From NCBI RefSeq assembly GCF_021028975.2, contig NC_059432.1:66030001-66094000 (forward strand): 64,000 bases of DNA. Reading direction: 5' to 3'. Below, piece by piece: positions 11,430 through 57,141 of the stretch. Both the position numbers and the translations under genes were made by a program. The notes beneath the pieces were generated by a model that was given only the letters and a program-made list of their open reading frames with translations, was not told the DNA's origin and did no database searches. The stretch comes from Sphaerodactylus townsendi (taxonomy: Eukaryota). Positions within the stretch are counted from its first letter, which is position 1, and every line of letters starts with the position of its first letter.

Positions 11430-11529
11430 CTAAACATAATCTTTGACGGATGTTACTGTCTCCAATGCTTTGTTGTAAATTAATTGTTCATTAGCTTTCT
11501 GGGTAGTAGCAGAACCATAATTGAAGTTT
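11430..11529 (-). CDS. claudin-10/15-like, exon 5 (C-terminal tail)
   Basis: Acceptor TTTTTAATTACAG|; (R)NFNYGSATTQKANEQLIYNKALETVTSVKDYV* ends in the claudin PDZ-binding YV; phase matches exon 4. Confidence 0.88.
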
Positions 11530-12085
11530 CTGTAATTAAAAAGAGGCATACATATTTGGTACCATTCTCTTTGACACATGGCATACACAATATATGTATA
11601 ACTCTGAAAAAAAATACGAATGTAATGTAATACATTTTTTAGCTATCACAGATCAATAAGGAAGTAATGCACAGCCTTCATACAGTGGGAGCTGAAAGTT
11701 GATCACAGTGAGTCCCACCACAAATATTATTAGCCTGGTGTAACTACAGGCATGATGCGCATGGAAACACGCCTCTGCATGTGTTTCTCAAGCTGATGGA
11801 TACAAACTGGCCCCTATACATTTGGTTTCCTATATTCATCCAACAGCTTGTGTCCTCCCAGTAACCATGCTTTTTCAGAAGAAAATCCCATGTATTTCAA
11901 TATTTAACACATTTTATGTTATTTCATTTGATGTGTTAAACTTTATGAAAAGTTTTCACATGGAATTCAATACCGGAAATATATCAGAAGTCTGTGAGAA
12001 AACAAACGGTCCCTAAAATAATGTCTGAACCAATGAAAACACCATTTCATTCACAACTTTTGCTTTTCAATATCAGTTAAAATAC

Positions 12086-12196
12086 CTGTGATTCTGTTTT
12101 TTTATTCCTTTGCATGAGCATGTCACGAGGATCCCACCAAGTATAGAAATCAGAGAGCCAGCCCAGCCTATGTACAGTGCATGTCCCAGTTCATAT
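12086..12196 (-). CDS. claudin-10/15-like, exon 4
   Basis: [29 protein letters not shown], the claudin TM4 motif; AG/GT boundaries, 111 nt. Confidence 0.93.
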
Positions 12197-12610
12197 CTGG
12201 AATAAAAAAGATTCTATAGAAGCAGTACTCAATAAAATCAAAGGCAATGATTTTTCCAGTATATGACTGTCACTTAGACAAGGATGGAGAAAAAAAGGGG
12301 TGTACAGGAAGGTCAGGAGAAAAGGTTATTGCTACAGTGTCTGTGTGTCTGTGGAGTGCTTAGAAGAGGTCAGCTTAATGGACTGTGATGGAGACAAGGG
12401 AGAGGGGGATCTAAGTAGGAGCCTATGCTTCCCTAAACATTGATCCAGAAATATGTCTTTTACAAATATAGTCAAAAAATGAAGGAGGGAGGGGATTTGT
12501 CTCTTTATCATGCTGGAGCATGATCATTAGACAGGGATGGGAAAACAGAAAATAATAAACACTTATTCAAACAATAATGTATGTAATGTCACCTCATGTT
12601 GGGTTACTCT

Positions 12611-12869
12611 TAAGAACATAAGAACATAAGAAAGAGCCTGCTGGATCAGACCAGAGTCCACCTAGTCCAGCACTCTGCTACTCGCAGTGGCCCACCAGAT
12701 ACCTTTGGGAGCTCACATGCAGGATGTGAAAGCAATGGCCTTCTGCGGCTGCTGCTCCCGAGCACCTGGTCTGCTAAGGCATTTGCAATCTCAGATCAAG
12801 GAGGACCAAGATTGGTAGCCATACATCGACTTCTCCTCCATAAATATGTCCAAGCCCCTTTTAAAGCTA
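12611..12869 (-). mobile_element. 5'-truncated CR1 (3' UTR and tail), same family as the 930-5840 copy
   Basis: Reverse complement closely matches 5580-5840; tail TAAGAACATAAGAACATAAG. Confidence 0.9.
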
Positions 12870-13075
12870 ATCTTCCTTAAGGGAATCACAGTGCAGACCG
12901 TGAGGAGCCAGATATTTATTTCAGGCAATCACTGTATAATTGATAATATCCTAATATCAATTAATGTATTCAGATTACACAACATTTAGCCCTAAACATT
13001 TGGCATTGGTTAAAAATGTTCATGTATTGTAATGACTGAGTTGAGCTAACAATACAAGGAGACCCATTAACTTAC

Positions 13076-13157
13076 TTTGTTCCAGCATACAGTGAATCAA
13101 AAAACTGAGCTGTGATCATTGATGCATACCAAGAAACAGCCACCATTGATGAGAGAC
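13076..13157 (-). CDS. claudin-10/15-like, exon 3
   Basis: GLSSMVAVSWYASMITAQFFDSLYAGTK; 82 nt, CAG|/|GTAAG boundaries. Confidence 0.93.
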
Positions 13158-14676
13158 CTGGAGAAACAAAACAGTTCATGAGGGTATTCCTGAGGGGCCA
13201 GGAGCAACAGTAAAGCTGACATTTCTATGCACATTTGTTTGAGCACAGCTCAACTCTGCCTCCAGATTCACTCCCCAGCATTTCCAGTTTAAAAGCTTTT
13301 TGGCAGCTTACTGGGTTCAGTCTCAGACCCTAGAGTGCCACTGTCAGTCAAAGTAGGCAGTACTGATTCAGAATTAGTACAAGTTAGTGTCATATATCCA
13401 AATGAGTTTCTCTGTGTGCCATCAAGTTATGGTTGACTTATGATAACACTTAAGGATTTTCAAGGCACGAGACGTTCAGAGGTGGTTTGCCATTCCTGCC
13501 TCTGGAGAACATGGGAGGAAAGAGGTGGGGGTAAACAGTGTTATGATGGGGAAAGGCACCACCACCAGAAATGAGAGGACACAAGAAAGAAAGGAAATGT
13601 GGGAGTAAGAAGCTGGAGAAGTTCCCATGTGTTTCTCATGGTTGCCTATTTATTGTTCAGATTTCCCAAATAAAAACTATTCTGAGCATATAGGAAAAAA
13701 TCTTTTTTCAAAAGATGAGGAATGAATGGGTTTTCCCCAGGGCTATTGGCTGGTTCCATTTTCAGGATATTCTCTGCAGTCCTATTGGCAGTGGCACTGT
13801 TTTGACACTATCTGCATTATCATGGAGGATTCACACCACTTTAGATAGGTTGCTATTTTCACACCCTTATTCCTATCCACTCTGCAACTTCACTTTTTTT
13901 GCAGATACCGATAGGTGTCTGTTTCTGCAACCTTTTTTTTTGAGTGTTGCTAAGCACTATAATGCCATTGCATGATTTAAAAAGTGTCCCTCTAATTAAT
14001 TTATTTCCCAAGCCATTACAAAGTTGCACATCTATTAGTGGCAATGTTTGTCACTATAAAATTATGGAGCTAATTTCTTAGGGTTCCAATAAAACAAAAG
14101 CAAATGCTGATGTTGGCAGGACCTGCTGCACAGCTTGAAGACTGGAGGCTGAAGGAGAAAGTCCCACTAGACTAGTAAGAAATTACTATCAACCAGATCA
14201 TGGGGGCGGTTTTTGCTTTGCATCACCTCGAAGATTTGTTAGAGCAACCATCTCAGCATATTATAGATTAGCAGCACAAAGATCACTGAGATGACTAGGA
14301 CCGAGCTTCTATTCCACTTACTAGAAATACATTACAGAAATTAACAACAAGAAAAAGTAGGAATGCAACTCTGAAAGAATGGGAAAGCACTGGCACGTTT
14401 GGGGCATGGTGTAGAACTTCCATTAATCATGGCAAGGTTGCCCAATGTTGAACCAACCTAGTTTGAGTCATATAGAGTTCTTCACTTTGCAGCCATCCTA
14501 TAGACTCTACTTGGGTCACTCTGTGGTCTGGATTGAGTCACTTGATTTGTGAGGAGCTAGTAGGTGGATGTGTTGCTACTTCACAGCAGAGGTTGGGACT
14601 AGATTTCTCTTCATTCCTTTCTATCCCCAGGATTTCATTTTCTCCACTCTTATCAAAGGTGCTCCTGATTTCTCAC

Positions 14677-14841
14677 CTGATAAAATGAAGAGCATTCCTC
14701 CTGTTGTGGCAATCTTCGCCTTTGTATATTTATTACTGTGCCCAAGTTGAGTGCACTCTAAACCAAACACTGTCACCAGAACACCAAACAGACCCAAGAT
14801 AAGGGAAATGACCATCAGGGCTCGGCATGCTTGGATATAAG
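14677..14841 (-). CDS. claudin-10/15-like, exon 2
   Basis: YIQACRALMVISLILGLFGVLVTVFGLECTQLG...KAKIATTGGMLFILS; 165 nt, phase 1/1. Confidence 0.95.
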
Positions 14842-15994
14842 CTGCAACAGAAGGAAAATTGATAGAAGTCAGGGTTTTTTTTAAATTCCAGGAATTTAAT
14901 AAGAATCAAAGAATCAAAAAGTGTCATTCTTAACGAGCTTGGAAGTAAAGATGCAAAAACAAATGTGGGCATACAGAGGTGAGCAATAACCTGGGCAAAT
15001 ACTCTGTACACATACATTCCCATAATTTGGTGGCCATTTTCTTACTTCAGTTTAATTTTTGAAGCTGTCCTTCCTTTCCTCACTTCCATGATTTATTTCT
15101 CTTCCCTTGCAAAATCTCTGGTTCTCATATCTTGACTCTATCCAGCTCCTAGCTTACACCTAAATTATTAGTGAATTTTGTGAAAGTCCCATTGAGGTAA
15201 ATTGCTCCTTTCCTCAGCATCACTTAACAGAGACTTAGAGCTACTAATAACATTGCCATCTTTTTAATCCTTTAGTGAAGAGGGAAACCAGAAGTGGAAA
15301 GACCTTCATAGGGAAATGTGAAATGCTTGAGAGCACTGTATCATAGTGTGTATTGATTCACCAAGTAATTTATTAAACCAATTTACCAAGCTCTAGAAGT
15401 TGCAACACATGACTAATGAATCAAGTGGCAAGGACAGGTGATGAGGAAATCAATGTAAGCTGCATGATTTTTATATAATCTTTTGTTATGCAGCTGAATT
15501 ATGAGCTATTATCTAACATTGCCATTTGCTTTTGAGGTTAGGGAGAGTGTCACAAGGCCAGGAACTCCTGCCTTTTAAATCCTGGGTTATTTTCTTCCAG
15601 ATACTCAAAAACCACTGAGTTTTCCAAAGATTTATTAAAACAACAGAAGATAAGAAATGTTTCTAATACACGGATTTCTCAGCTCATCTCTAGCATCATT
15701 CCAGGCAGTTTTTTTGTTTCAGACCTGGCACCGAAGTTCTTCCTCCTGCCCCGCCTGAATTAGAACACCCTTTGTTCGCACTCTTTGGTCCCCAGGTAAA
15801 CTCTGTTTCCTGGCCTTGTTGTAAACCAGTTCTTTGTTCTTACTGTTTGGCTACTAGCTTTCTTTTGGGTAATTTATTCAAAGCCTTTCCGTTTCCTTTC
15901 TGCAGATCAAAGGCCCTTGTCAGGCTAGTATGAATCTGCCTGATACTGTACCCAGAGCAACCTCTTCACAGATAGTTTTGTTCAATGAAACTTC

Positions 15995-16145
15995 CTGATC
16001 TTGGGCTAGTCACAGTTCTTTGGAACTCTCTCAGCCCCACCTACCTCATAGGTGTCTGTTGTGCAGAAAGGGAGGGAAAGGAGTTAGTAAGCCACCTTGA
16101 GTCTCCTTACAGGAGAGAAAGGTGGGGTATAAATCCAAACTCTTC
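15995..16145 (+). mobile_element. SINE 3' fragment
   Basis: CTTGGGCTAGTCACAG...CTCTCAGCCCCACCTACCTCA...GGTATAAATCCAAACTCTTC; same family as 43905-44185. Confidence 0.7.
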
Positions 16146-16670
16146 TTTTATTTAATTGTCTGAGCATGCGGACATGAATAACAAAAGTGATGAGCTAGCA
16201 AGGAGTTCAACCCAGGGTTGAGATCCCCTATTTTTGGCAAATAAATAAATAGCATGAGCTTCACAAAACTTCCCATAGGGCCCAAAGTCTGTTCTTCTCC
16301 ACACCTGTCTACTCAGGCATTCCCAGGTTTGCTTGGAGTCTTGTAGTTAGGGAGATCAGCCTCCATATGGGACCTGGGGAATTCCTGGAATTACTTCTCA
16401 TCTTCAGACTACAGAGATCACTTCCCCTGGAGAAATGAATGTTTTGGAGGGTAGACACTAAGGCAGGGGTGTAACGAGGCAGCCCTGGGCAAACTGTAGC
16501 CCTGGGCAAAACCTGAGTTGGATGCCACCCCACCCCCCCCATGGGCGGCCACTCCACCATGACCAAATTTTTTTTGCACCAGGACATTGGTGCCTGCAGG
16601 GGGTGCGTTTTAGAAATATCAGCACCACAATTTCTTTTTTTTAAATATTTTTATTGATATTTCGGAATTA

Positions 16671-19600: not shown

Positions 19601-20718
19601 TGGCTAGATTGTTTCCCATTGACTTTATATTGGTTCTTTGAAATTGATTTTTACCCATGTGTCTTTTTTCCATAACTCTGAGCTGATCCAATTCCTCCAG
19701 TTGTTTATTTAGTAGTTTTAATTCATTTATAGTCCTCGTTATATTATTTCTGTTCTGTAGTTTGTCTCTGCAGTCTTTGATTTTTTCCACTAATTGATGT
19801 CTTCTTTCCTTATTTAATAATCGCTTTTTTCTGTCTTTTTTGTATTTCTATACAATACCCTCTCATTACTGCCTTCGAGGCATCCCATTTCAACATCCGT
19901 CCAAGAGGCGGTGTTGTTTCTATTTTTTCTAGAAAATAATTTTTCATTCGCTTTCCTGTAAAATCTCTCTTATTTCTTTTCATTCTTCATTATAATATTA
20001 TCATATCTCCATCTATACTGTTTTGTCCTCTTTTTGCCAAAGGTCTGAATGTAGCTACCACGGGAGACATGGTCTGAAATCCACTCTTTATGTGTCTGGC
20101 TCTTTCTACACATTGAATAAGACTCCATGTTCTTTTGTCAGAATATAGTCTAGCTTGTGTAATGTAAGATTTTTTTTTTATATGTCTGTTAGAATAGAAA
20201 GTTGGTTGTTGTGATTTTCCCGTCTCCTCATACATATTAGTTATATTCCATTTTTTAAAGCCCTTATAAGTTCTTAAATCCATATTACAGTCTCCCACTA
20301 TTAATGTTTCTCCTTTATATTCCCTTTGTACTCTGTTAAATTGTTTTTGTAGGAAACTCTTTTGCTTTTTGTTAGGTGCATATAAGTTCATTAGTGTTAT
20401 TTGTATCTCATTAAGGAAACCTTGTAACAAAATCCATCTCCCATTTTGATCCTTCAATATTTTTTGCACTTGTATGTTTATATTATTTTTCGCCAAAATA
20501 GCAACACCATTCTTCTTTCCCTCTGCTCTTGATTCACATAAGGTTCTCCAGCCCGGTAGCTTTATTAAAGGAGCAATATCTCTCTTTCTTTTATGCGTTT
20601 CTTGGATGCAAACCAAATCCCAGTTTTCTTTCTTAACTAGTTTGGCTAGTTTAAATCTTTTGAAATTGGAATTTAATCCGTTAATATTTACAGATACAAG
20701 TTTTAAATCTCCTGCCAT
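16671..20718 (-). pseudogene. L1 ORF2 (APE endonuclease-RT-Cys-rich), frameshifted as assembled
   Basis: Clean endonuclease N-terminus in ORF 19990-20718; RT and C-terminal motifs distributed over several frames. Confidence 0.85.
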
Positions 20719-21275
20719 AAGTAATAATTTTTGTCTACTATTTTCGGGCCTGCTGCTGTTTCATATTCATTTATTTTTTCCCCTCATTTTCCCCCCTTCT
20801 CCCCCTTTCCAGATGTTCCTCCCTCCCACATCTTGGATTTTCGGCCTCTGCGGTCTTCCCTCCCCCCCCCAGCATATATTCTTAGTCAATTCTCTCTGTT
20901 AATGGCAATCAATCAGTTTAAAAATTCTTACAACATTCAAATAAAAAGATACTTCTAAATACATACATATCAACTAGATTGCATCTTACAACCTATTTTT
21001 CCATCAGAAGAGAGTTTTCTGTCTGGGCATTCCGCCCATTTTGATGTTTACTGAAACAGTGTTGAAGCTAGATAATACTATTCAAAACAAATTTCTGGGA
21101 AACTTTCCCAGGTTGTTAAAGTAAACAATGTTAGAGCAGATTACTGTTTTAATATCTTCTAAAAACTACATACAAGAGTTATTTTAGTTAGTGATTGTTA
21201 TTCAGTTAAATTCTATTAGTACTTAGAGTGAAATGTTATATAGCCATTTAAAAGAATTTTTGAAGAAGTCTTGAC

Positions 21276-22094: not shown

Positions 22095-25000
22095 ATTTTT
22101 GCTTCGCCCTTTATCTTTTTAGTATTTTAATTGGACTCACCGGTTTGTTTTTCGTCTCTTCAAAGCTGTCCGGTGTTCTCTCTTTTGAGTTCTCTGTTTT
22201 AAGTTGATTATTAGTCTTTATCTTCTCTTTTATGCCATTAAATCTTTGTTGCTTGCTGGGAGGGTGTCGAAAAGCGTCTAATCCTTGTCGGACATGCGCA
22301 GAAAAGGCAGCACCACAATTTCAGCATATCATCAGGAGACTGTCCTTATGCTACTCCCCAAGTTTGGTGAGGTTTGGTTCAAGGAGTCCAAAGTTATGGA
22401 CTCCCAAAAGGGGTGCCCCATCCCCATTGTTTCCAATGGGAGCTAATAGGAGATGAGGGCTACAGTTTTGAGGGTCCATAACTTTGGCCCCCTTGAACCA
22501 AACTGCACCAAACCTGGGGGGTGTCATCAGGGCAGTATCCTGATGAGACCCTGAAAGCTTTGAGACTGTGCCTTCAGAAATGTCCCCCCCAGCCTGCAAT
22601 CCCAATGGATAGCAATATAGAAAACTCAATGCAGAACAAAGATTCTTGGGCAAATTTCTGGAATGTTCCTGCAGGGGGCGCATTCTTGGATGTATAGGCA
22701 CCAGAATTTCAGGGTATCACCTGGAAACTGTCTTTATGGTACCCCCAAAGTTTGGTGCAGTTTGGTTTAGGGGGTCCAAAGTTATGGACCCTCAAAAGGG
22801 GTACCGAATCCCACATTCTTTGCTAAGGAGATGGGGGCTACCCTTTTGAGGGTCCATAACTTTGGACCCACTGAACCAAACTGCACCAAACCTTGGGGGT
22901 GCCATCATGACAGTCTCCAGATGATACCCTGAAATTTTGGTGTTGATACATCCAAGAATGCCCTCCCTGCAAGAACATCCCAAAATTTGCCCAAGAATCT
23001 TCTGCATTGAGTTTTCTATATTGCGATCCATTGGGGTTGCAGGCTGGGGGGGACATTTCTGAAGGCACAGTCTCAAAGCTTTCAGGGTCTCATCAGGATA
23101 CTGCCCTAATGATTCCCCCCAGGTTTGGTGCAGTTTGGTTCAGGGGGGCCAAAGTTATGGACCCTCAAAACTGTAGCCCCATCTCCTATTAGCTCCCATT
23201 GGAAACACTGGGGGATAGGGGCACCCCCTTTGGGAGTCCATAACTTTGGACTCCCTGAACCAAACCTCACCAAACTTGGGGGGTTGCATAAGGACAGTCT
23301 CTTGATGATACGCTGAAAATTTGGTGCCGCTAGCCTAAAAACTGCGCCCCCTGTAGGCCAAAAATGGAAAACCACTAAAATACCTAAAAACAAACCCAGC
23401 ATTTTGATGCCCCCCACAAGGTGATGCCCTGGGCAGCTGCCCACCTTGTCCAATGGGCATTACGCCAGTGCACTAAGGCATTTCACCCAGCAAGGTCCCT
23501 GTCCTCTCCCAAGCTCAAATCTCCAGGAGTTTACTAATCTGGATCTGGCAATCTCACGTTCCTGTATCTCACCAGTGTCTGCAGGAACCCAGGAACCCTT
23601 CTTGTTACTGACTGAGGGAAATAGGGAGAAAACTGGGTGGGGAAGAAGAGTTGGGTGAAAATGGTTCAGGGGAAGGGTAAAGGTCCACTCATGCCAGAGA
23701 TGCTGAAGAGAGAAGCAAGGACAACATTTTGTGGGTTAGAATCACTTCTAAGCCCCATGCAGTTGAACAAGTAGTGAGATTTGTTTCATATGGTGTTCAA
23801 TTTAGGTCTGAGTGGTTTAAGGAATAGCCAAGAATGAATCTTTGTCTGGTCCATAGTGGCTTCAGCAGCCTTGCCTCCTGCCCATTGATTCTCACAGTTG
23901 TGGCATTGCACCAGCGATGCAGACAGACACAAAATGTTCTGCTGCCACAGAAGCCTATACATGAATTCAGACATGCTATCTAAAGTGGTTTGTGCATGTG
24001 TGATAAATAGGAAGGCAGTTTCCAATGGATTTCTGAATTGCTTCATGGCTACACATGAAGATGGCTTTACAACTGCATCTCAATCTTCCTGCACTATTTC
24101 CAGTGCACACGTGATTTCAGTCTTTATTACTGTGCCAACATCCAGCCAAACCTGTGGCATAACAATGACTCATAGTGAGACTGTACAACATAAAAATCAG
24201 CAGAAAGGGCTATGGAGAAGTCACCAATGGCCTCAACATTGCTTGACATCACAATAAAGTTCTTTCGGATTTCATGGAATCATCCATGTTAGTATAATTT
24301 GTTGAATAGTAGTAAAAATTTCTAACGGAATGGTAACTAATGAGCAAAATAGCAAGATATATTCAAGATAGAGCATTTATTTTTGCTGTCCCCAGAAATT
24401 CAGATCTGAGATATGTAATCCCTGTGTGACATCACAAGTGATGCTGGAGCACTTCTCTTGGTTTCTGCTTACCACAGTTGCTCATGCCACACCAATGTTT
24501 GATCCAGAAATAAATTACATCTTAATATCCTCTGAGATGTTACCAGGAAACTTACAATTTTTATTTATTTACTTATACTCTGCTTTTTTCCGCATTTCCT
24601 TTCATCGTACTGAAGGGCGAGTTCATTCAGAATGCACATAGTAAGGGTAACCAACCCTACAACTTAACCCTAAAAAAACTTGCTGTCCCAAATGACTGCA
24701 TGCACTAGCCGTGTGGTTGCACTGGACTTGGACGGACTTGGCCCCCTCATCTCAGATAAGTCACCATGTGACTTCATACTATGTTGATGCAAAGCACATC
24801 ATCATCACTCTCATAGCTAGCATATCTTTTAAGTACAGGGTACTACTGTTTTCTGTGCAGTGACAGAACTTTGATTTCCTCTCTTATCAGACATATACCC
24901 GGATGACTAATTGCCTTCAAGTATAATAAAAATCACTTTTAAAGCAATGAAACAAATGAAGTCAGCAGCCAACTGATTGCCAAGTGCCAAATATGTTATC

Positions 25001-29538: not shown

Positions 29539-29755
29539 CAGGAAGTGCTAGAAGTGTGTCAAACTCTCTGCAATTGGAGACACCAGTACTGTCTTCCGCA
29601 CAGCTGCGCCACAGGTTTTCATATATGGTGGAGGATGTAATCACACTCCCAAGATTAGAAGATACTTTCCAGTAGCTATTTGACAAAACTGCTCCAACCA
29701 TTATCCATCCACTAATACAGAATAGAAATCCAGCGATTTCTAAAATAACAGACAT
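29539..29755 (-). CDS. claudin-10/15-like, proximal first exon (10b/15-type)
   Basis: MSVILEIAGFLFCISGW...YWKVSS...YENLWRSCAEDSTGVSNCREF with W-LW-C-C signature; 217 nt, donor G|GTATG, phase 1; exons 1-5 sum to 675 nt = 224 aa + stop. Confidence 0.95.
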
Positions 29756-34557: not shown

Positions 34558-35640
34558 ATAGAATCATAGGAGTTGGAAAGGGTCATCCTGGTCATCTAGT
34601 CCAACTCCCTGCTCAATGCGGGATCAATTTAATGTTTGTCCAGCTACTACTTGAAAACTGCCAGTGTGTGTAGTTTACCACGTCCCTCGGTAGCCGATTC
34701 CACTGTTGGAAACTCTTATTGCATTTTTCCCCCCCAAAATCCAGCTGGCACCTTTCTGCTAGTAATTTAAACACATTATTGTGACTTTCTTCTGCTGCCT
34801 TTGTATAGGGCCCAGGAACCTGAACTCATCCAATGAAAACAGGTGCTTCTTAACAATTTCTCTGTCCCTGTCAGCCAGCAGCCCAGATACCGTGCTTTGC
34901 CCTCTACCATCTCTAGATGTCTGATTTCTTCTTCAGGGAAAAAACTTGAAGCAAAGTAGGCACTGAGCTTTTCTGCTTTCTCTCTGTCATCTTCCAGAGT
35001 TTCTCCATTTTCAGCTATTTCCTCTTTTATCTTGCATTTGCTCCTCACACATCTGAAGAAGATTTTTTAGTTGTAGTGAGCTTTTCTGGCCATCCTCAGC
35101 TAAGTGTGAGCTTTGGCCTCTCTGATGGCTGATCTAGAGTCCCTAGCAACCCACAGATGCTCTTCTTTAGAGGTATGTCCTTGCCTCTTCTTGAACATTT
35201 TCTTTTTTCCTCCCTTAATTCATTGTGAAATTCTCTATTCATCCACATTAGCTGATTGGATCCCCTACTATGTCTCCTTCTTGTTGGAATAGTGATGGCT
35301 TGAGCTTTCAGAGCTCTTCTTTTAGGACAGTCCACCCATCACTTGCTTCTTCCCCTTCCAGTAGTCTTGCCCATCATTGCCTCTGAGATTAGTAATGTCT
35401 GCCCTATTAAAATCTAACATACGCATGTAGCTACGAACTTCCTTGGTTCCCCATAGCAAAAGAAATTCTAGAGGACACAGTCACTTCCTTCTAAGGTCCT
35501 CAACACCTTCACCCCATCTACCATCTCTTGGCTGTTGATCAATATCAAGTTGAGTATTGCTGAACCCCTCATAGCTTCTTCTAACATTTGATAGAGGAAG
35601 TTGACAGCCAGGACAGTAAGGAACTTGTGTGACTGTAGAC
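34558..35640 (-). mobile_element. old CR1, 3' half (end of endonuclease, linker, internal deletion, 3' tail)
   Basis: - strand reads LQSHKFLTVLAVNFLYQMLEEAMRGSAILNLILIN, WMNRE, DREKAEKLSAYFAS; CR1 3' end ATAGAATCATAG...ATCTAGTCCAAC at ~34560. Confidence 0.8.
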
Positions 35641-35681
35641 CAGGGGTAGGGAACCTGCGGCTCTCCAGATGTTTACCCCAG
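35641..35681. mobile_element. collapsed 41-bp remnant of the palindromic hAT MITE (left inversion breakpoint)
   Basis: First 33 nt identical to 49424-49456 (CAGGGGTAGGGAACCTGCGGCTCTCCAGATGTT), followed directly by TACCCCAG, the terminal 8 nt with one mismatch. Confidence 0.9.
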
Positions 35682-36025
35682 GTATAGCTAGTTTAACCAG
35701 CAACTCTTCTGCAAAACCAAAACCTAAAAACTAAGCTACATATGATATAAATTACCTGCAATATTCCATTATTGAATAACTTTAAAAGTGTATATTGGTA
35801 TAAAATGGTATTCCAATAAAATTGCTATAAAATTTAAAGTTTACCTAACTAATTTTTTTCTTTGATGCTGGGTTCAGGTTACAGAAAAGTCCCTAGATTT
35901 CAATAATGTCTCCTGTAGGTTAAACCCCCCCCCCCCCAATAACCCTATTTCCTTTTTAACATAGTATGCTTAGTATAGTTTCTGAAAAGAAGGTAGATGA
36001 GATTGGATTCAGAAGTGGGACTCAC

Positions 36026-36096
36026 AGCTCCAAGTGATGGTCCAAACCTTCCTGTGGCTACTTTGCAGACATAACTTACAAATGTGGAAACAGCAC
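36026..36096 (-). CDS. PARL: presenilin-associated rhomboid-like protease, exon 7
   Basis: GAVSTFVSYVCKVATGRFGPSLGA; 71 nt; TAG|/|GTGAGT. Confidence 0.94.
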
Positions 36097-36886
36097 CTAG
36101 AAAAAATTAGTTAAGAAATTAGTTAAGAAATAACATCTCTGGAACCCAAAGCCCTTGAATATTTCTGCTTTCTGTACTAGCCATCCCTCTCACTTATCCA
36201 ACTAAACCTTTTCTAAGGAGCAGCAATGTTTAAGATGGACACAGCCCTCTTTCAGATAATTATTTTAGAAAGTTTATAAGCTGCCTCTTCAGATACCTGC
36301 TTGACTAGAATGTATACACAAGGTGAAAAGCATATCCTGTTCCCAAAGTTGCCTCAATTTAGCGCATGAAGAGCAATGCTTTCCTTTCCCCCTACCACCT
36401 CACTGGGACTTTAAAGCATGCTCTGGTCTTCTAGAAATAAAAATAGGCCTACAGGTGAGGGCAGCAATGGTATTCTATCATAGCTGGCCTCTTTCCCTCC
36501 TCTTTCCCTTTCCTTTCTTTTCCCGTTCTTTTTCTTTCCCTTCTGTTTTCCCTCTCTTTAACTCATTCTCCTTAGTTTGGTGAGAAGTTAATTTTATAGC
36601 ACCTTGTAATTCATTGTTGTAAATGTTAATCTGGTAATTTGTAAACCACACTAAGCCCATTAAGGGGAACGGCAGCCTAGAAATAAACTTATAAATAAAA
36701 TTTAAAAATAAAAATAAGACTCCCTACTTTTTTTTGCTTCTGCATACAAAACAGGCATTCTACCACTAACCACAGACCCTCCCCAAGATATAATACACAA
36801 TACATTCTAAATATCAGTCACATTTAAAGTTATTTTAGCAGCATAAATTAAACATCTAAATATAACCAAGCTTCCGAGTTTATTAC

Positions 36887-37036
36887 CGGCAGAGAAATAG
36901 ACTGCAATGAACTGCTCAGGTCCCAGAAGAGAGACTATGCTGGTTGAGAAGCTCCACAGAACATACATGTTGGCTGCCATGTGCAGAAATGAGAAATGAC
37001 TAAAGGTCGACAGCACCATAGGAAAGCACAAAACTC
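36887..37036 (-). CDS. PARL: PARL exon 6
   Basis: [49 protein letters not shown]; 150 nt. Confidence 0.96.
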
Positions 37037-38133
37037 CTAGGTAAAGAGGAAATGCTATTAGATCATTTTCTTACTATATTCACTCTTAATTTAGGAACTT
37101 ATTTGTTGGAGAAAACTTGACAATGTGTCACATCTGGGTTTCCAAAGCTATTAAGTATTGTCCATCTAACATAAAAAAAGACTAGCCGTCTAACTTCTAT
37201 ATGATAGTTGGGATGGAGTGGAAGAGACATCTTTTTGGTCAGTATGTGTATCAGTTTTTAAATTATGTATTTAATAACAATGGATGGCCCTCTTGTGCAG
37301 ATCAAAAAACCCAGGGTCTATGGCATATGCTTCTGCAAATCTAAGGTAACACTAGGGTAAAAAGAGACTGATTAATCTCAGTTCATGAGACAGTTCATGA
37401 TAGTTCACATGATAGAGACAGTTCATGAGACAGTTCACGTACTCATTAGAAAGAGATGCTGCATTAAAGCTTGACGGATTAGCTGCTTTATATTTCTTTC
37501 AGAATCCTCAGATGAAGCACAAATACATCAGCTACACTTCAGAAGAAGAAACAAGAAATAAGAGGTATTTCTTTGCCTTCTTTACTTGTCATCACAACTC
37601 ACCCCTCTTTCAGAAATCTATCCTGCTACTTCTGACTGATATATAGGTACTATTGTTTTAAAGTAAGAACTAGAATCTCTTTCACAGGATGTTCAGGGCA
37701 GAACCCATGGGTGCTGTCAGGAGTCCCAACCCATTAAAAAGTGTGGGTAACTAGTATTCCCTAGACATGGGAAGGAATCCATTCCATTTTGAGGCCATGG
37801 TTCTCCATCATATCTGCCTTTCCAACTAAAGAACTGCTCAATCAAAAAATGAAGAGTTTCATACTCTCAAATGCAAAAAGAGTACCTAACATGCACAACT
37901 CTTACCTAGTCGATATAACATAAGGAGATATTTTCAAATGTATAAGACATTCATTTTGAGCATTAATATTATCTCAGTAACTATAGCAATATCTATGTGT
38001 AGGTATTATTTTAATTCATTCATTAATTTCTAAGCAGAATCCTTTTCCTTTTACTGAATCCCCAAGTCATAAAGCCAACATAAGTATCAATTAAAAACCA
38101 AGATCTGAATCGTTACAACTACAGCATACTTAC

Positions 38134-38229
38134 GAGAAGCAGGATTAGATGTAAAATATGTGACCATTATCCGCTGCAAAGCAGGTACCCGCCATAAGCA
38201 GAATACTAAGACATTCGCTGCTATAATGC
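38134..38229 (-). CDS. PARL: PARL exon 5
   Basis: GIIAANVLVFCLWRVPALQRIMVTYFTSNPAS; 96 nt. Confidence 0.95.
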
Positions 38230-39235
38230 CTACAAATTTAAAGAGAGTTTAGTGACAAGGCTGACAATCTGGAAAATGATTCAGCTTACAATGTATACAG
38301 CCTAAGAATTATTTCTTTCTTATAAATTCAGTCACCATAAAGTTACTATTTTTAAAAGTGCATTTAAGCAAGAATTACTGAATACGTTATTGGGATAAAG
38401 TCTTGAATTTTCCGCCTAATGGCTAAGAAAATATTGGAAAAAAACAAAACATTGGGTATCCTGATGCCTGAAATAATAGGAAGGAAATATCCTGCATTAG
38501 ATAGGTAATCACTATTTTCTTAAAATGCTGATTTTTAGTTACTGAAATATTTATGTAATAAATGTGCATAAAGCAAATTGTTGTGATATCTTAGTAATAT
38601 ATACATCTTTCTAAGTACACAACTGATGCCAGGACTAACAACTGTTCAAGTGTCCTAGAAGACAGGATCATTCCACCTGAACAGATAAATAATACTCCTT
38701 TAGGAGTAATTTGGCAGCAATATGTCACAATTCTACACAGAAATTAACAGGTAAACTAATAGTGTAGATAATATTAGCATAAACAGAATATGTGCCAGGA
38801 GTGTTTGGGAACATCTCTGATATCTGTACAAGATTCAAGTTGAGGTTCTGTTTCCTCTTCTGCTTGATTGAAGGTACTAAAACCCTGGCCAAAGGCAGAG
38901 ACATAAGCCTTTGGGCAAGAACCAAAGGCCTTGAGTCTTAGCCCGTGGCTTATGCCTGTGAGTTACTCCCCCAGCAGATCTAGGACCAATCTGGAATTCA
39001 TGCTGCATATTTTTGTTTTCTCCTTCTCATTTGTTGAAATTATATTTGGAAGGCTGTGGTTGGGAGGGGGGAGCTGCTTTGGGTTGACAGCAGAGACAAA
39101 AGCAGCATATAAATCCCAACATAAATACTTAGAGAAGCAAGATTGCCCTAGGTTTAACAGCCATCCAGTAACATACTGTACCTGTGTCATATCTCTCTTC
39201 CTGAGAATGTCTAATACTTGTAAGCTAACACAAAC

Positions 39236-39284
39236 CTGACACAGCACGTTGCCCTTCACTCAAAGATTTCCACCATATGTGAAT
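39236..39284 (-). CDS. PARL: PARL exon 4
   Basis: IHIWWKSLSEGQRAVS; 49 nt; TAG|/|GT, phases fit neighbours. Confidence 0.9.
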
Positions 39285-40601
39285 CTAAAACAGAATGAAC
39301 AAAAGCCTCATCAGGATACCCAAAGTACCCAGCACCTCAAGGAATTAAATACATACATGTGAGCATGTGTAATGAATACTCTTGTCCCATAATTTCCCAA
39401 AAATAAAACTATTCAGAAATGTTTATTTTGAATGGATGAACATGATATAGTTCTTCGCTAGTTTATGAAAGAACGCAAATTAGTTGATTATTGCTTTCAT
39501 TTTAAGATCTGGTCATTTTAAGATCTTGTTTTAGACCATGAGGAAAACATACACTTGATGCATAAGAGAAGCAATAATATTCTGCTTTGTTGCCCTCTTG
39601 CATATGTTAACTAAAAAAAAGAAAAGAAAAATACCCAGTTTCAAAAGCAAGCTTATCAGAGCCATACCTTCTGACAAAGCAACAATATGACAGTGTGCAC
39701 CAGTTCCTGTGCTCTGCCTGAATTTTCTGCTTCATGGACTTTTCATGATTTATTTCTAGAATCCTGTTAAAGGAAAAAATCTCAGATCCCCATGTGAGCT
39801 TCCAATGAGTCTAATATTTCAGGCATCTGAGGTAAACCGATAAGTAGCAACCCCTAAATTTCCCTTTGTCTCTTAAATGGCAGATTCTCACTGAGGCTCA
39901 AGTCGGATTGTACAACAATGCAATCAAATAGGTGAAATCCAACAAACAATGCTCAATTTGCATAATGTGCACATTATGCCATCCAGATTTGGGGGACTGG
40001 AATATGACAATTCCATACTTTTGGATATTAATTGGTCATGGTGTATTTTTTCTGCTATGGAATAAACTCTTGCTTCCTGCTTATTTGTTCTTATTTTTAT
40101 TGATTTGATTTTGTTTTATTCGATTACCTGCATCCTCCCAAGTTGCAGGTGGGCTCAGGGCAGCTAAGACACATAATTTCAATTATAAAACAATTTAACA
40201 ATTAAATGATATAAATATTAAAAACATTCTAATATTTAAAAGCATTCACATACGGCAATTTGAATATCAGATTTTCAATCACATGCACTTGAAAGCAATA
40301 GAGATTGGTCAGCTGCCTCTTATGCCCTTGATTATGGCTTTTCAAATAAGTACAGACTCAATCCCAGAGAAGAAAACTTTAAACATATTATTTTCTTTTA
40401 CATTTGAGATCCACATGATCTTATTTCATATCATGCCAAACTCTATCAAATGGACCAAGATGCACCATGATCAGCTTTTTGTTCTACATTGAAAGTTCTG
40501 CTGTGATATAGTTTGGATTTGTAGGAGAACAATCATAATTAATGTCCTAGAAAAACTGAGGCACTTCCAAATGCCTAAGGAACAGAAATAGAGATTATTA
40601 A

Positions 40602-40878
40602 CAGCCCAATCTGGGGAGGCAAGGGGATTGATATGTGAAGGAAGCACAGGCTTGCCCTGGAGCCCTTACCCTGGTGGAGGGGCAAATACAACAGCAGGTG
40701 GATGCCATGGTCCTCTGGGAAAATTCTTGGGGGTAGAGTCGACATTAGTCAGCTTCCACCTTGGTTTTGAATGGTGTGGGGAGGGGGCTCTGTCTTTCTG
40801 TGCTGCCAGAAAGCCCTCTGGAGGCAGTGGTGCAGAAGCACTGCTGTCCCCAGCCACTTCGGTTTGTGGATTGGGCTG
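40602..40878. repeat. old element bounded by CAGCCCAAT/ATTGGGCTG inverted ends; related copy at 51111-51566
   Basis: Short terminal inverted repeats seen at both loci; interior diverged. Confidence 0.5.
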
Positions 40879-40969
40879 CCCTTGCCCAGATGGAGTGAAA
40901 ATAAGAGAACTGCCTTTTCATTTGTTCCTGTTTTTACCAAATCATTCTGAGGGTTTAAGGCTGAGAAGA

Positions 40970-41200
40970 GGAGCCAGTGTGATATAGTGGTAGAAAAAAC
41001 ACTCTAATCTGGGGACTAAGTTCAATTCCCCACTCCTCCACATGAAACTTGCTGTGTGACCTTGGGCCAGTCACAGTTTTCTCAAAAATCTTTCAGTCCA
41101 AGGAGAGGGATGCAATGGCAAACCACCTCCAAAATTATCTTAGCTTGAAACTCCTACATGGTCTCCATAAGTCAGTGTTACTTGATGGCACTTTTGACAA
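40970..41200 (+). mobile_element. squamate SINE
   Basis: Similar along its length to the copy at 621-851. Confidence 0.75.
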
Positions 41201-41799
41201 TCAAGGTTAAGAAGATGACAAAAAGCCTTGCCAGTCCTGGATCCTGCACATCAGCTCAGGACTGAGGATTCTTTTTAAGCTACTCAACGTTTTATGCTGT
41301 TTTTATGCCCTGGCTAGGTTTTAAATGGTTAACAACTTGTATCATGTTTTATGCTTTATTTTGTTAGTCAGTTCCAGCAGCTTTTATGGAGGTGGCCCCA
41401 GACATTTTCTAAATAAACTGCACAGCATAAACAACCAAATCAGTAAATATGTCCATGAAATATACAACACCCTATTATATTTCCATGGCCATCTTGGAGA
41501 CTACTAATCATCAAAACACAGTAAAAACAATGGTCATAAAAGCTAAATAAACATTCTGCTTGTGACTCGCATATTCTTAGAACTTTTTATACAAAAGGCT
41601 GAAATTATTTTCTTTGAGATTCACTAGTAAAATTAAGGTACTTTGCAAAGGCCCTAGATATTAAGACATAGCAGGGAAAGTGTTAATGAATTTGTCTACA
41701 AGAATGCACAAATGATCTACCAATTAGCACAAAGCACTTGTGTCTCAGTGAATGGTTGACAAGAACAAATTTGCAAAAATATACATAAGTTCCTCATAC

Positions 41800-41940
41800 C
41801 TCTCTCCTGATGTCCAACCCTGTACGTATCTTCATCCTATCCAACCAGTCATCTCGAGTATTCTCAAAATACCTCTGGAACTTTGCTTTGAGAGTTTCAT
41901 ATTGCCATATAGCTGCTGTGCCAAAAGCACAACCTGAAAA
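41800..41940 (-). CDS. PARL: PARL exon 3
   Basis: FSGCAFGTAAIWQYETLKAKFQRYFENTRDDWLDRMKIRTGLDIRRE; 141 nt. Confidence 0.95.
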
Positions 41941-42237
41941 CTATAAGTATAATCAAGATATAGAATAAGAGTAAAATGTGTGGGGGGAGTAGGGATAGAA
42001 TTAAAATCTGCAAACATTCAAGGTTGACAACAGAATCACAAAAGCAGTTGTATAACTAGTATAGCCAACTACAATTAATGCATATTATTAAAAACATTAA
42101 ATAATTCACTGTACATTGAATTATTGTACTTCCCTTTAAGTATGAACTACAACATCTCTAATTGCCAGACTCTGTATGGTACAAGCGTTCTGTACCTTCC
42201 ATGGGCTGGAGAATTTTGACAAACACATTCTTGTACA

Positions 42238-42400
42238 TGGGTGCTGTGTGGTTTCCGGGCTGTATGGCCGAGGATCCTCTGAAGATGGGAGCCACAGATG
42301 CAGGCAAAACGTCAGGAGAGAATGCTGCTAGAACACGGCCATACAGCCCAGAAACGACATAGCACCCAAGTGATTCCAGCCGTTAAAGCCTTCGACAATA
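42238..42400. mobile_element. short Penelope-like repeat in PARL intron 2; related copy at ~51570-51870
   Basis: CCTCTGAAGATG...GCAGGCAAAACGTCAGGAG...AAAGCCTTCGACAATACA with an inverted 5' piece; flanked by duplicated ACATTCTTGTACA. Confidence 0.6.
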
Positions 42401-42570
42401 CATTCTTGTACACTTTATTGCTGTAATGGCTCTGACTACCAAAATCCAACCTCTGTACAAGTAGGAAACCCTATTCTACAACAGTTTGTGTAACAAAATA
42501 ATAAAACAGTTTGTGTCAGCAATAAAGTATAGCTGCCAATGTAATTTAAACACACTGAAAGCAGTATTAC

Positions 42571-42763
42571 CCCAACTGTGAAGAAGAATGGCTTCAGAAG
42601 CTTCTTCACTGAATGGGAAGGTGTTGGAAAGATGACATCCTCTACCGGAGGAGACAAACCACTTCTCTGTGGTTTAGTACTGGCTTTTGAGTTAGGATTT
42701 TGGACATCGTTCTTCTGTGTTGGTCTTCTGAATCCATGTCTTTGTTGAGTATACAAGGTAGTT
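42571..42763 (-). CDS. PARL: PARL exon 2
   Basis: QQRHGFRRP...RSGLSPPVEDVIFPTP...LLKPFFFTVG; 193 nt; CAG|/|GTAAT. Confidence 0.92.
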
Positions 42764-43285
42764 CTGATCAGAAAATATATACCGAACACAAAAGAGATTA
42801 ATTTTAAATATCTCCTGCATGTGAAGATACATTATTTTCTTTATCAGAAAACAACAACAATAACATTTTCAAGCACTCCAAGATTTCATTTTGTCCCCCT
42901 CTTTAACTTTGGGTATGTATGTAAGACTTTTTCCACAAGCACTCCTAGTTGTCTTAAATGATGGAGGTACTACCAATAAAATCTTCTGGTTTCTAACACT
43001 ATAGAACTATTAGACTTAACTCCATCATCTTCATATATATATTTGTAATCCTGCGTTTCAACTGAGGGTCCTCAAGAGGTCGCTTAACAGGAAATCTCCA
43101 TGTTCATAGGTAAAGTATACTGCAAAACAATATGCTAAGCCTATACGTTGGGGAGGGGTGTGTGTGGAATCTGACTCCCAACAATAGAAAACGTCAGAAC
43201 ATGGGACGCTTATTTTCGCGTTCCCTATCTTACTCTTTTCCCAAAACGCTATCGCCCTCCTCCAGAAGGGAGCGCTTTATCGTAC

Positions 43286-43356
43286 CTACGTGCCCGAACT
43301 CCACTAGTCCATAACTCCCGTCCGACCCATACGCGAGCGCAGCAGGTCCACGCCAT
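43286..43356 (-). CDS. PARL: PARL exon 1 (mitochondrial targeting region)
   Basis: MAWTCCARVWVGRELWTSGVRAR; Kozak AAAATGG; donor AG|GTACG, phase 2 matches exon 2; lies in a CpG-rich patch. Confidence 0.88.
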
Positions 43357-43570
43357 TTTCCTCAACCCCCCAACATAACTTTTCCGGGTCGCCCAACGCT
43401 TCCGGCCGCCATCTTGGAAGCGGTAGTACTGACGCGGCATAAACACGTCACAGGTAAACAAACGAACCGGAAGGTTTGCCTGCGACGCTTGGAAGGGTTC
43501 CTCGCCTCCTAGAAGCCCGGAATCTTGTTGCGTTACATTAAAGGGATTAGGAGTCTGCCGTACGTTGTTT
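43357..43570 (-). promoter_or_regulatory. PARL CpG-rich promoter / 5' UTR
   Basis: High CpG density; YY1-type GCCGCCATCTTG (~43406-43417), ETS/GABP-type CTTCCGG (43399) and CCGGAAG (43467), typical of housekeeping mitochondrial genes. Confidence 0.7.
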
Positions 43571-43757
43571 GTGCTCTATCGTGGGCTTGTAACAGGCATT
43601 TCACAGTTCCTTGCGTGGATCTCCCAGACATTTAGGACAAGCTGTACAGTTATAAATTCTATTCGTTGCCCCTCTAATGAAAAAAAAAAAAGGGAAAACG
43701 AGTTCATTTATAACTATTGCAACTCGGTATCAATATGCTGTGCAGATTCCACTTTAA

Positions 43758-43896
43758 GGCCCCTTCGGCACATGCAGAATAAGGCACTTTCAATCCACTT
43801 TGCAGCTGGATTTTCTGTGCAGAATAGGAAAATCCACTTGCAAACAATTGTGAAAGTGGATTGAAAGTGCATTATTCTGCATGAACAGAAGGGGTC
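43758..43896. mobile_element. PIF/Harbinger-type MITE
   Basis: Palindromic GGCCCCTTC...CACATGCAGAATAA / TTATTCTGCATG...GAAGGGGTC; same family as 48150 and 59138. Confidence 0.75.
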
Positions 43897-43904
43897 AAAT
43901 TCTT

Positions 43905-44185
43905 GAAGAAGAAGAGTTTGGATTTATATCCCCCCCCCCCCTTTCGTTCCTATAGGAGACTCAAAGGGGCTTACAATCTCCTTGCCCTTCCCCCCCTCAC
44001 AACAAACACCCTGTGAGGTAGGTGGGGCTGAGAGAGCTCCAAAAATCTGTGACTAGCCCAAGGTCACCCAGTTGGCATGTGTGGGAGTGCACAGGCTAAT
44101 TTGAATTCCCTAGATAAGTGCCCACAGCTCAGGTTTTTCCAGATTAGAATGCACCTGCTCTTAACCACTACACCACTGCTGCTCC
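43905..44185 (-). mobile_element. squamate SINE
   Basis: (GAA)n tail, GAGTTTGGATTTATA...CCCAAGGTCACCCAG...CTCTTAACCACTACACCA (reverse box A). Confidence 0.8.
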
Positions 44186-45733
44186 CCTGCATACACCTGC
44201 AAGGCAGTCTCATTGACTGAGGATGCTGGAATAAATCTCACCCTGAACATTCAAGAACACGTATTACAGGACTGCACACCTCTTACAAACTTGCTGAATC
44301 AACATCATCTTCAAAAATATGTTTCAAAACTGATGTGTTCAGTTAACAATCACTGTTTAAAGAAATTCACATTGAAGCTCTTATCTTAAATGCTTTTTCC
44401 ATTTCAGTGCATTTGTAGTTCTTAACTGTTTAATAAAACCTTTATTTAATGTAATGTTATTCAACCAATTCATTTTTGAATGGTGGTCAGGGAAATTGAC
44501 AAAAGTTGGTCAAAGAAAATTGCGGAAATGGAAAATAAATTTTTAGAGGTAACCCTGGATTGAGCAAATCCCCTTGAGAAAATGGTCTTTTGGAGGGTGG
44601 ACTCTGTTATGTTATACCTCATTGAGGCTTCTCTTTGCCTTCCCAAGGTTCCACACCCAAATCTCCAGGAATTTCCCAGTCCAGAGTGGATGATTGTACA
44701 GTGAAATACTGGAGAATTATGATATTGTAATCTTTATGAGACACCTGGATTCCATACCTCACTTCCAGGTGCAAGAAAGAAGGCCTTTTTGTGCTCAAAA
44801 TTTGGAAATACATCAATTCAAAGTGGACAGCATCAAAAAACCCACACAAGGGACTGTCACTGTAACCTTGAGGCTTGGTGATTGTAATTCTCTCTACTTG
44901 AATCTGATCTTAAAGTCTTTTCAGAAACTCCAGCTATCACAGAATACTACAACTCAGTTTCTACATTGGGGCATATTATGAACTTATTAATGTTACAAAT
45001 GGAGCAAATAGATATATTTTTAACTCATCCATAAAACTAGGTTGATGCCCAGTTACTCTCCAAAATCATACATTCATATTTGAAAAGAAAAAAATGGGGT
45101 GAGGGTTTACTTGGGAGCAGAAAAAGGAGAAAAAGCACCCTACCTATTTATTAATCCTCTACAGTAAGAGTCTTCCATCTATATATTATCCCCCTGAATA
45201 TTGTACTGGTTCCCATGTGTGCAAAGATAACATCTAATTTTCCCCTAATTTCTGTCTGCAGTGTAGAATCAATGAACCTGTCTGCTTTACAGTACACTGG
45301 CCTGAAGGCAGATGATACAACAATTGTGTCAATGTGGATCGGAACACTGTGCATGCTATCTTGAGCAGGGAATATCAGGAATGAAAACAGGGTATAAGGG
45401 TATTATGCAAGTTATTGTAAGGATTGCTGAATTGATGTATGTGAATTCCAGAGGGATATATGTGTTAATCTATTGCAGCCCAAGTGGAAGAGTTTTGTGG
45501 CATTTTAAAGACAAGTCTACGGTGGCCCAAGCTTTCATTAGCCTACTTCTTCAGATACAGCAAGAATTACGTTCATTTGGCAGAGAGATTTACAAGCAGC
45601 AACAGGGGCATTTTATAAAAGAGCAGCAGACCTAATTTTCAGGATGGGCAGCCCAATTCCAATAACTACCTGATTTTCCATCAGATATTCTCCCAAGTAT
45701 AGATAAATAACAACAGATGCCCTTCTGTGAGGG

Positions 45734-46610
45734 CATTATACTACGCCACTGGCCGCCTCGGGTAACATTAAGTAATTTGTAGCCTGTGCAACATAGTGAG
45801 GCGAGGGAAGCCGCGGTTCTTCAAAAAGCAACCTATTTTAGATCTGAAGTGGCTGCTGCCGGTCGGGCAGGGGAAACGCCGAGTTTCAAAGCCAACCGCT
45901 AGAACTTTTATACAATAATACATCAAAGAGTATAGGGGGCAGGTAAGGGGGCAGGTCCCTTACCATACAACAATAAAGAAACATCAACACATAAAAGAAA
46001 AGGTACAATTACAACTTTGTGAATGGGACCATGAGATCTCACTGTCAGGTGACTTTTCACGAGACTTTACGATAGTGCTGAAATGGAGAGCGGAGAGAGT
46101 CCCATTCATAAAACTGGGTGAGCCTGTTTAACGCACCCAGGAATCTGGTTATCAGATGGGCTGCTTTCTTGAGTTATGAACTGCGCCTCAGTCCCGCAAC
46201 TGCGCCTCAGTCCCGCAACAAAAGAAAGTTCAAATGGTCCAGTGGTGATCTTGGCACGTTCTTCAATGGCTGGGATTTCTGGGGTGCTGTTATCAGATTC
46301 CGCTCTCTGTAGAATCTGGAAGCGGGTCCTTGTTTCTGCTAAAAAGATCTACTGGTAAGCTAGCCTAAAACTGAATTCTAAGGCTAGCTTCCCTTTGGCT
46401 CTTAATATCAGCTAGCAAGGGCAGTTTTCATTGTCATTGCTTTTACCCATAGATACGGATATTTAAAATAACATTTCTAAACTTAAACATTAGAGAAAAC
46501 CTAGGAGCCACCAATACAGTACAAGCACATATACGTAACCAAAGCCTTAAATACTGGAAAACCTAGCTAGAGCATAATCCTAAACACTGGGCAAATAATA
46601 AATCCAACAC
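45734..46610 (-). mobile_element. unclassified LTR-like insertion
   Basis: Flanked by TGAGGG direct repeats (45728-45733, 46611-46616); CpG-retaining; - strand begins (G)TGTTGG; internal 19-bp tandem duplication at 46179-46216. Confidence 0.45.
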
Positions 46611-47229
46611 TGAGGGGGACTTTTGAACAACACTGGTCTCTTTGCTCTGATCTTTAGCCAGTGTGGTGACAGGCTCAGGAAAATATTTTTCTTATTTTCC
46701 TGGTGGTAACAATATGGCATAGTGTCTGGAAAGCCTTGATTTTTAGCATGAGGGGGAAAGGTTGTAAAGCATTACGAAATACTTTTTCTGTTTGCAAAAC
46801 TGACCCCCAACCTGCTGATGCAACTCTGCACTGGAACGTTGACAAGGGAACACAAGTTTTACAACAGTAAGTACAACATTCTGTTTTTTTGGAAATTTGA
46901 ATCTATATAATATATTTCAGCAAATATGGTGAAATATTTTAAACTTTTAATTGGATTATTTGGTTCAAAATATATTAGAAATGTGTAAATTAATTATATA
47001 TAAATGCATGAAAAATCTAATCTACACTGCATGCTCAAAAATAACATTTGGCATATATTTACATAAAAATATTTAATATATTTTCTTTGTTGAGTGTTTA
47101 TTTTCATGCATAGCTCAATAGTGTGCCTAATACACATTGTTTGATCTCTATTGCTAGAACATCAATCTTTTGAATAGACCTCTGGTATCAGCATCTATAA
47201 GACAAAACTCCAAAACTTTTCATTGAAGA

Positions 47230-47449
47230 ATGGCATCGGCATCTTTTCAGATCTCTGGATTACTTCTGGCTGCTCTGGGTTTTATCCTTTTACTTGTTGC
47301 CACTGTGTCCAATAGCTGGAAAATTTCCAGTTCAACAAACCCAATTATTCCTGCAAGCTGGATCTATGAAGGTCTCTGGATGAACTGTGCAACTACTAAT
47401 TTGGCCTTGGTTCGGTGTAAGAGATTCTCTTTCTTCCTAAGTTTAGACA
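47230..47449 (+). CDS. orphaned claudin first exon, claudin-10a-like; probable distal alternative exon 1 of the - strand claudin
   Basis: MASASFQISGLLLAALGF...WKISS...SWIYEGLWMNCATTNLALVRCKRF; 220 nt, consensus donor A|GTAAGT, phase 1; no claudin exons 2-5 found downstream on +. Confidence 0.9.

Positions 47450-56388: not shown

Positions 56389-57141
<753 letters not shown>

Follow-up and report, generated by a model that had tools for sequence, protein, structure and literature searches.

The mammalian claudin gene CLDN10 has two alternative first exons (1a and 1b), which join common exons 2–5 (PMC7140793), and in claudin-10b a ring of aspartates at D56 serves as the selectivity filter (PMC11617971). 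Among the claudin 15-like genes of teleosts, zebrafish cldn15lb is known for its part in hepatocyte polarity and bile-duct formation (reviewed in PMC3875606). Here, we analyzed a claudin gene of the gecko Sphaerodactylus townsendi that lies within a stretch of 64,000 nucleotides (NCBI RefSeq assembly GCF_021028975.2, contig NC_059432.1, positions 66,030,001 to 66,094,000 of the forward strand), hereafter called the window; coordinates are those of the window unless another species is named. An earlier examination of the letters alone (the sequence-only reading) had proposed a claudin-10/15-like gene with two alternative first exons of opposite pore charge, the upstream one of which was mis-oriented by an inversion. 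The explanation that we favor, with a probability of about 0.75, is a five-exon claudin 15-like gene that begins with one or the other of two first coding exons, the upstream (a-type) of which is displaced in this assembly by a 13.9-kb inversion. According to this explanation, either the a-type or the proximal (b-type) exon, each with its own ATG, the first transmembrane segment, and the greater part of the first extracellular loop, would be spliced to the same exon 2, and this animal would use both, each presumably under its own promoter. The b-type isoform would form a cation-selective paracellular pore, and the a-type isoform a junction whose permeability differs from this, be it an anion pore or a barrier. 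The block carrying the a-type exon may have been inverted through exchange inside two palindromic copies of a miniature inverted-repeat transposable element (MITE).

The coding exons of the gene, all of which were located in the window, are the following (lengths in nucleotides, nt).

47230..47449, + strand: a-type (upstream) alternative first coding exon, 220 nt; begins with ATG and encodes the first transmembrane segment and the first extracellular loop; 73 codons plus 1 nt, phase 1, GTAAGT donor
29539..29755, - strand: b-type (proximal) alternative first coding exon, claudin-15-like, 217 nt; begins with ATG; 72 codons plus 1 nt, phase 1, GTATGT donor
14677..14841, - strand: shared exon 2, 165 nt; AG acceptor and GT donor
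13076..13157, - strand: shared exon 3, 82 nt; AG and GT splice sites
12086..12196, - strand: shared exon 4, 111 nt; AG and GT splice sites
11430..11529, - strand: shared exon 5, a coding stretch of 100 nt that closes with the TAG stop; the protein ends in KDYV, a PDZ-binding tail

The coordinates and phase of both first exons agreed with those of the sequence-only reading. The a-type exon ends in GACA followed by GTAAGT, and the b-type exon in CCTG followed by GTATGT; since both are in phase 1 and exon 2 begins at 14841 after an AG, either of them can join exon 2 in frame. At the a-type junction that had been proposed, TTAGACA would be joined to the start of exon 2, CTTATATCC, which would yield the junction peptide D-T-YIQACRALM; the corresponding b-type peptide is P-A-YIQACRALM. 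Computed arithmetically, the coding length of the a-isoform is 678 nt (225 amino acids, aa) and that of the b-isoform is 675 nt (224 aa); these are the lengths of both annotated turtle isoforms. Both first exons matched the Pfam family PF00822 (PMP22_Claudin) with E-values of 1.2e-08 (a-type) and 1.5e-08 (b-type); the bit scores of the a-type exon (35.5), the b-type exon (35.2), and exon 2 (32.9) all exceeded the gathering cut-off of 26.7. The first-loop claudin signature W-(G/N)LW-C-C was found in both, as W30, EGLW, C53, and C63 in the a-type exon and as W29, ENLW, C52, and C62 in the b-type exon. A short-read contig (46673–48172) spans the a-type exon with zero differences.

A tblastn search of the whole window with the gene's own exons 2–5 detected no second set of these exons, in agreement with the earlier view that the upstream exon has none of its own. 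A weak match at 62706–62638 (E 0.024) was dismissed as a chance hit, being preceded by stop codons and devoid of the YELG..GW motif. The first intron of the gene contains a large palindromic repeat of about 1 kb (22307–23330) that matches its own reverse complement at ~90% identity.

The identity of the gene was assessed by comparison with database proteins. When 1.84 billion representatives were searched, without a profile, with the a-type exon, the best match was a painted-turtle RefSeq protein, claudin-19-like isoform X3 (64% identical), which reads on as SLD-T-YIQACRALM, that is, with the very junction proposed for the gecko. Two fish models among the a-type matches wrongly string the a-type and b-type exons together, a fusion that is to be expected when exon 2 is preceded by both of them. 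Starting from the turtle protein, a word search yielded 330 proteins of turtles, crocodilians, birds, lizards, geckos, and amphibians, which are named claudin-19-like, -15-like, or -7-like and are often labeled isoform X1 or X2. The a-type (225 aa) and b-type (224 aa) proteins of Pelusios (pair P0159/P0244) are identical from residue 74 on, and the X1 and X2 isoforms of cldn15lb in Salminus (P0283/P0297) and Brachyhypopomus (P0284/P0336) differ only in having an a-type or a b-type first exon. Two closely related species, Danio rerio with an X2 protein (b-type) and Danio aesculapii with an X1 protein (a-type), differ in the same way.

A tree of the shared part (exons 2–5), in which the leopard gecko protein P0165 stood in for the window gene, joined the tetrapod gene to cldn15la and cldn15lb and set it off from CLDN10 and CLDN15, with moderate support (87/78) and several long branches. 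Judged by these comparisons, the window gene is the gecko orthologue of vertebrate claudin 15-like, the tetrapod counterpart of teleost cldn15la/lb. The suggestion of an unrecognized paralogue was thereby overturned: the gene is already named and widely annotated, with both isoforms given by RefSeq and Ensembl in many species, and as the isoform pair is already in the databases, this is not the discovery of a new gene. No paper on the two first exons of claudin 15-like was found in the searchable library.

The same exon order, namely a-type exon, b-type exon, and exon 2 on one strand, was observed in five other genomes, at the following positions of the respective loci.

Leopard gecko: a-type exon 10001, b-type exon 21633, exon 2 31009
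Paroedura: a-type exon 10001, b-type exon 15255, exon 2 19994
Green turtle (Chelonia): a-type exon 10001, b-type exon 27628, exon 2 34570
Duck (Anas): a-type exon 10001, b-type exon 14414, exon 2 17162
Piranha (Serrasalmus): a-type exon 10028, b-type exon 13200, exon 2 15717

In the sauropsid loci, PARL is situated upstream and is divergently transcribed (head-to-head), and a DSPc phosphatase gene is situated downstream. The identity of the window exons to those of the leopard gecko is 77% for the a-type and 86% for the b-type. Two duck contigs from public sequencing runs hold the whole a-type protein as a single open frame, and one of them, the mRNA contig L007, when placed on the genome, runs from a short 5' exon to the a-type exon and on to exon 2, skipping the b-type exon. 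Splicing of the a-type exon to exon 2 is proven at the transcript level in a bird. The short non-coding first exon of the duck a-type transcript lies at 9450–9510 of the locus (L004), some 430 nt ahead of the coding exon of the a-type.

In the window, the a-type exon is found on the + strand solely because a block of the assembly is inverted. This block, at ~35.67–49.5 kb (13.9 kb), carries the a-type exon together with PARL exons 1–7.

36026..43450 (approximate), - strand: PARL exons 1–7, inside the block; exon 1 at a CpG island (43.2–43.6 kb), head-to-head with the a-type exon
50490..53917 (approximate), + strand: PARL exons 8–10, outside the block, on the opposite strand to exons 1–7
35641..35681, no strand: left inversion junction, an internally deleted copy of the palindromic MITE (33 + 8 nt)
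49424..49571, no strand: right inversion junction, the full 148-nt palindromic MITE, self-complementary at 142/148 positions

The split of PARL, the colinearity with gecko loci, and the target duplications of the MITE bear out the claim that an inversion mis-orients the upstream exon. In comparison with the leopard gecko locus, 5972–34559 is colinear in reverse and 39988–47525 is colinear forwards; the Paroedura locus gave the same colinearity, with the forward block reaching 47843. This combination of reverse and forward colinearity indicates that the middle block is flipped. The 8-bp target duplication CTGTAGAC at 35633–35640 pairs with the reverse complement of 49416–49423, and the 8-bp duplication AGCTATAC at 49572–49579 pairs with the reverse complement of 35682–35689, so that the duplications match only once the block is flipped back. 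The un-inverted joining of the flanks also makes the reading frame of a long interspersed nuclear element (LINE) endonuclease continuous. With the block flipped back, the a-type donor is located ~8.0 kb upstream of the b-type ATG; the upstream placement given by the sequence-only reading thus stood, and its distance of 7.9 kb was slightly short. The a-type exon then lies head-to-head with PARL exon 1, ~3.8 kb apart, and this un-inverted layout is that of the leopard gecko, in which the spacings are larger. Only open reading frame inspection combined with alignment revealed the short remnant of the MITE at 35.64 kb, and, the MITE palindrome itself excepted, no inverted repeats of at least 60 nt flank the block. 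Either recombination between the 33-nt inverted repeats or the turning of the assembler within the palindrome would fit the structure of the junctions.

As to the origin of the inversion, we lean towards an assembly error, and a real inversion, probably a heterozygous one, is quite possible. The absence of N gaps from the window and the position of the junctions in repeats able to mediate a true rearrangement argue for a real event. Between 44.6 and 50.6 kb, the contigs obtained from a DNA run (~80–110x) span the whole of the unique sequence and show no differences; they stop at the repeats 48172–48266, 49051–49328, and 49442–49555, the MITE included, and are uninformative on the right junction. 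If the inversion were real and fixed or common, the a-type exon would be a recently orphaned relic and only the b-type isoform would be made in this gecko, with no switch, which we consider improbable. Fixation is unlikely, since it would destroy the conserved mitochondrial protease PARL by splitting it between exons 7 and 8. Moreover, in RNA reads from a relative ~1% diverged, exons 7 and 8 of PARL are joined precisely at 50489/50490, which indicates that PARL is intact there. In the three RNA runs of the relative, a repeat resembling a short interspersed nuclear element (48148–48292) and the MITE at 49424–49571 had a depth of 50–300, which presumably stems from many genomic copies and not from this locus.

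Several observations do weigh against the gene model that we favor, and all but the first of them also speak for a relic. The contigs break at each repeat near the right junction, so that the assembled orientation is provisional. In the a-type exon, four positions conserved at 85% or more are altered, including G59A and S60L, and the ratio of nonsynonymous to synonymous substitution rates (dN/dS) was 0.68 and 0.52 for the a-type exon versus 0.23 and 0.31 for the b-type exon (0.68 versus 0.23 in the comparison with the leopard gecko), a measure which, with only 73 codons, cannot separate relaxed from purifying selection. The b-type exon of Paroedura picta (L002:15255–15470) is broken, the Trp codon of NLW being TGA and a 2-nt deletion shifting the frame near the exon end, while its a-type exon is intact; it seems that isoform-specific loss occurs in geckos. 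Finally, the depth on the a-type exon was zero in the three RNA runs of the close relative, the tissue of which is unspecified, and this result is uninformative rather than negative; no public run recorded as RNA contains the a-type exon, and no RNA runs were found for this species. Against a relic, however, the reading frame, ATG, donor, and all invariant residues of the a-type exon (G17, W30, EGLW, C53, C63) are intact, and its nucleotide identity to the leopard gecko is 89%, compared with 78% for the flanks. As for the view that the + strand exon opens a separate claudin gene with downstream exons of its own, its own ATG and its opposite strand in the assembly would suit such a gene, but no further claudin exons occur in the window, in the five other genomes the exon precedes the b-type exon and has the same orientation, and it is connected to the shared exon 2 both in database proteins and in the duck transcript. 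We regard this view as extremely implausible.

The claudin 15-like gene with its two first exons was also related to CLDN10 and CLDN15 by a phylogeny of the first exons, as the sequence-only reading had suggested. In the tree of first-exon peptides, the b-type exons formed one clade with the fish CLDN10b exon and the CLDN15 exon (100/99), the a-type exons grouped with the CLDN10a exons of mammals, fishes, and cyclostomes (80/84), and both groups were separated from the classic claudins (99/97); the 73 columns give this tree limited resolution, and CLDN10b and CLDN15 were represented by one sequence each. The proposed membership of the CLDN10/CLDN15 group was upheld. The topology of the first-exon tree would fit an a/b exon pair that is older than the gene duplication, without proving it. 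A broader scenario is tentative at best: the a/b pair may predate the split of CLDN10 and claudin 15-like, early vertebrates would then have had a dual-promoter gene for two channels, and non-mammals would keep a second switch, with a possibly anion-selective a-type, that mammals have lost.

With regard to the pore, the b-type exon has the acidic pore residues E46, E54, D55, and E64, and its best match among solved structures was claudin-15 (E 2.6e-20); the b-type isoform would most likely form a cation-selective paracellular pore. The first-loop charges counted in the sequence-only reading were correct for this species, with 4 basic and 2 acidic residues in the a-type exon (net +2) and 3 basic and 5 acidic residues in the b-type exon (net -2). 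The switch of opposite pore charge that had been drawn from them, however, is a fair reading for the b-type part and lacked support for the a-type anion part: among 109 a-type orthologues, a sample dominated by birds, the net charge of the loop ranged from -6 to +3 and was mostly negative, and so an anion/cation switch is not readable from net charge. The a-type exon lacks the acidic pore residues of claudin-15/-10b (E46, D55, E64). Two features of the a-type are conserved: an aspartate of the D55 type is absent, and the second Cys is followed by a Lys (Lys64, in a position that we take to be the equivalent of Arg62), which is kept in 103/107 orthologues; this gecko has Lys-Arg there. That the permeability of the a-type would differ from that of the b-type is well founded in these sequence features, whereas its role as an anion channel is not well founded.

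There is an almost even chance that the two exons do not form an anion/cation pair of the CLDN10a/10b kind, the a-type being a sealing claudin or a pore of other selectivity and the charge contrast in this gecko being incidental. Apart from the net charges of the orthologues, this is suggested by the solved structures nearest to the a-type exon, claudin-19 and claudin-4, both chains of which carry the same Lys after the second Cys. Claudin-4 and claudin-19 are barrier-type (sealing) claudins. It is also suggested by Ser35, which in an alignment made by eye occupies what we take to be the equivalent of CLDN10a Arg33. On the other side stand the grouping of the a-type with CLDN10a, and not with the classic claudins, in the first-exon tree, and the basic residue after the second Cys, which presumably corresponds to Arg62 of CLDN10a and Lys65 of claudin-17.

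Other features of the window and of its neighborhood are noted here. At 7303–7797 (+), in a CpG island (7.2–7.8 kb), there is a dual-specificity phosphatase exon with the active-site string YCKNGRSRS, in which Tyr replaces the usual His; the orthologous loci call a DSPc-domain gene at the matching place, and we take the phosphatase to resemble DUSP28. Beyond the phosphatase gene, the Paroedura locus has a P5CS/ALDH18-like gene (L002:34707–37983), in which an AA_kinase domain is combined with an aldehyde dehydrogenase domain. The idea of a shared synteny of ABCC4-CLDN10 and ABCC5-PARL was dropped, as the neighbor here is the DSPc phosphatase gene and not ABCC5. Just downstream of PARL, an open frame at 56401–57144 (+) lies in a GC-rich CpG island and presumably resembles exon 1 of MAP6D1. 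The first 6 kb of the window contain LINE fragments.

In this gecko, an annotation gap is likely, with the upstream exon of claudin 15-like and the 5' half of PARL in the flipped block. The result at this locus is mostly one of ordinary orthology, and the link to the exon pair of CLDN10 may merit the attention of specialists: claudin 15-like of fishes, amphibians, reptiles, and birds shares the two-first-exon design of CLDN10, with homologous exon types, and this design offers a lead on how paracellular ion flow may be tuned in the kidney, liver, and gut of non-mammals.

Compared with teleost cldn15lb/cldn15la, the gene has the same pair of products, given in RefSeq as X1 and X2 isoforms that differ by an a- or b-type first exon, the same YIQACRALM string, and the same K[AD]YV tail, and in the characiform locus of cldn15lb the a-type exon likewise precedes the b-type exon; unlike the teleost genes, the tetrapod gene is flanked by PARL and the DSPc phosphatase gene, and its names are inconsistent. 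With mammalian CLDN15 it shares a b-type exon that is 60–65% identical to exon 1 of claudin-15, including E46, D55, and an acidic residue at 64; to our knowledge, CLDN15 has only a b-type first exon. The b-type exon also keeps the aspartate corresponding to the selectivity filter D56 of claudin-10b. Mammalian CLDN10 resembles the gene in joining alternative first exons to shared exons 2–5, its 1a and 1b forms being those with which the a-type and, together with CLDN15, the b-type group in the first-exon tree, but it is a separate gene according to the tree of exons 2–5. In contrast to CLDN10a, the a-type loop has neither the motif specific to CLDN10a (RASSVITATW...CRPH) nor an equivalent of Arg33, and its net charge is not conserved.

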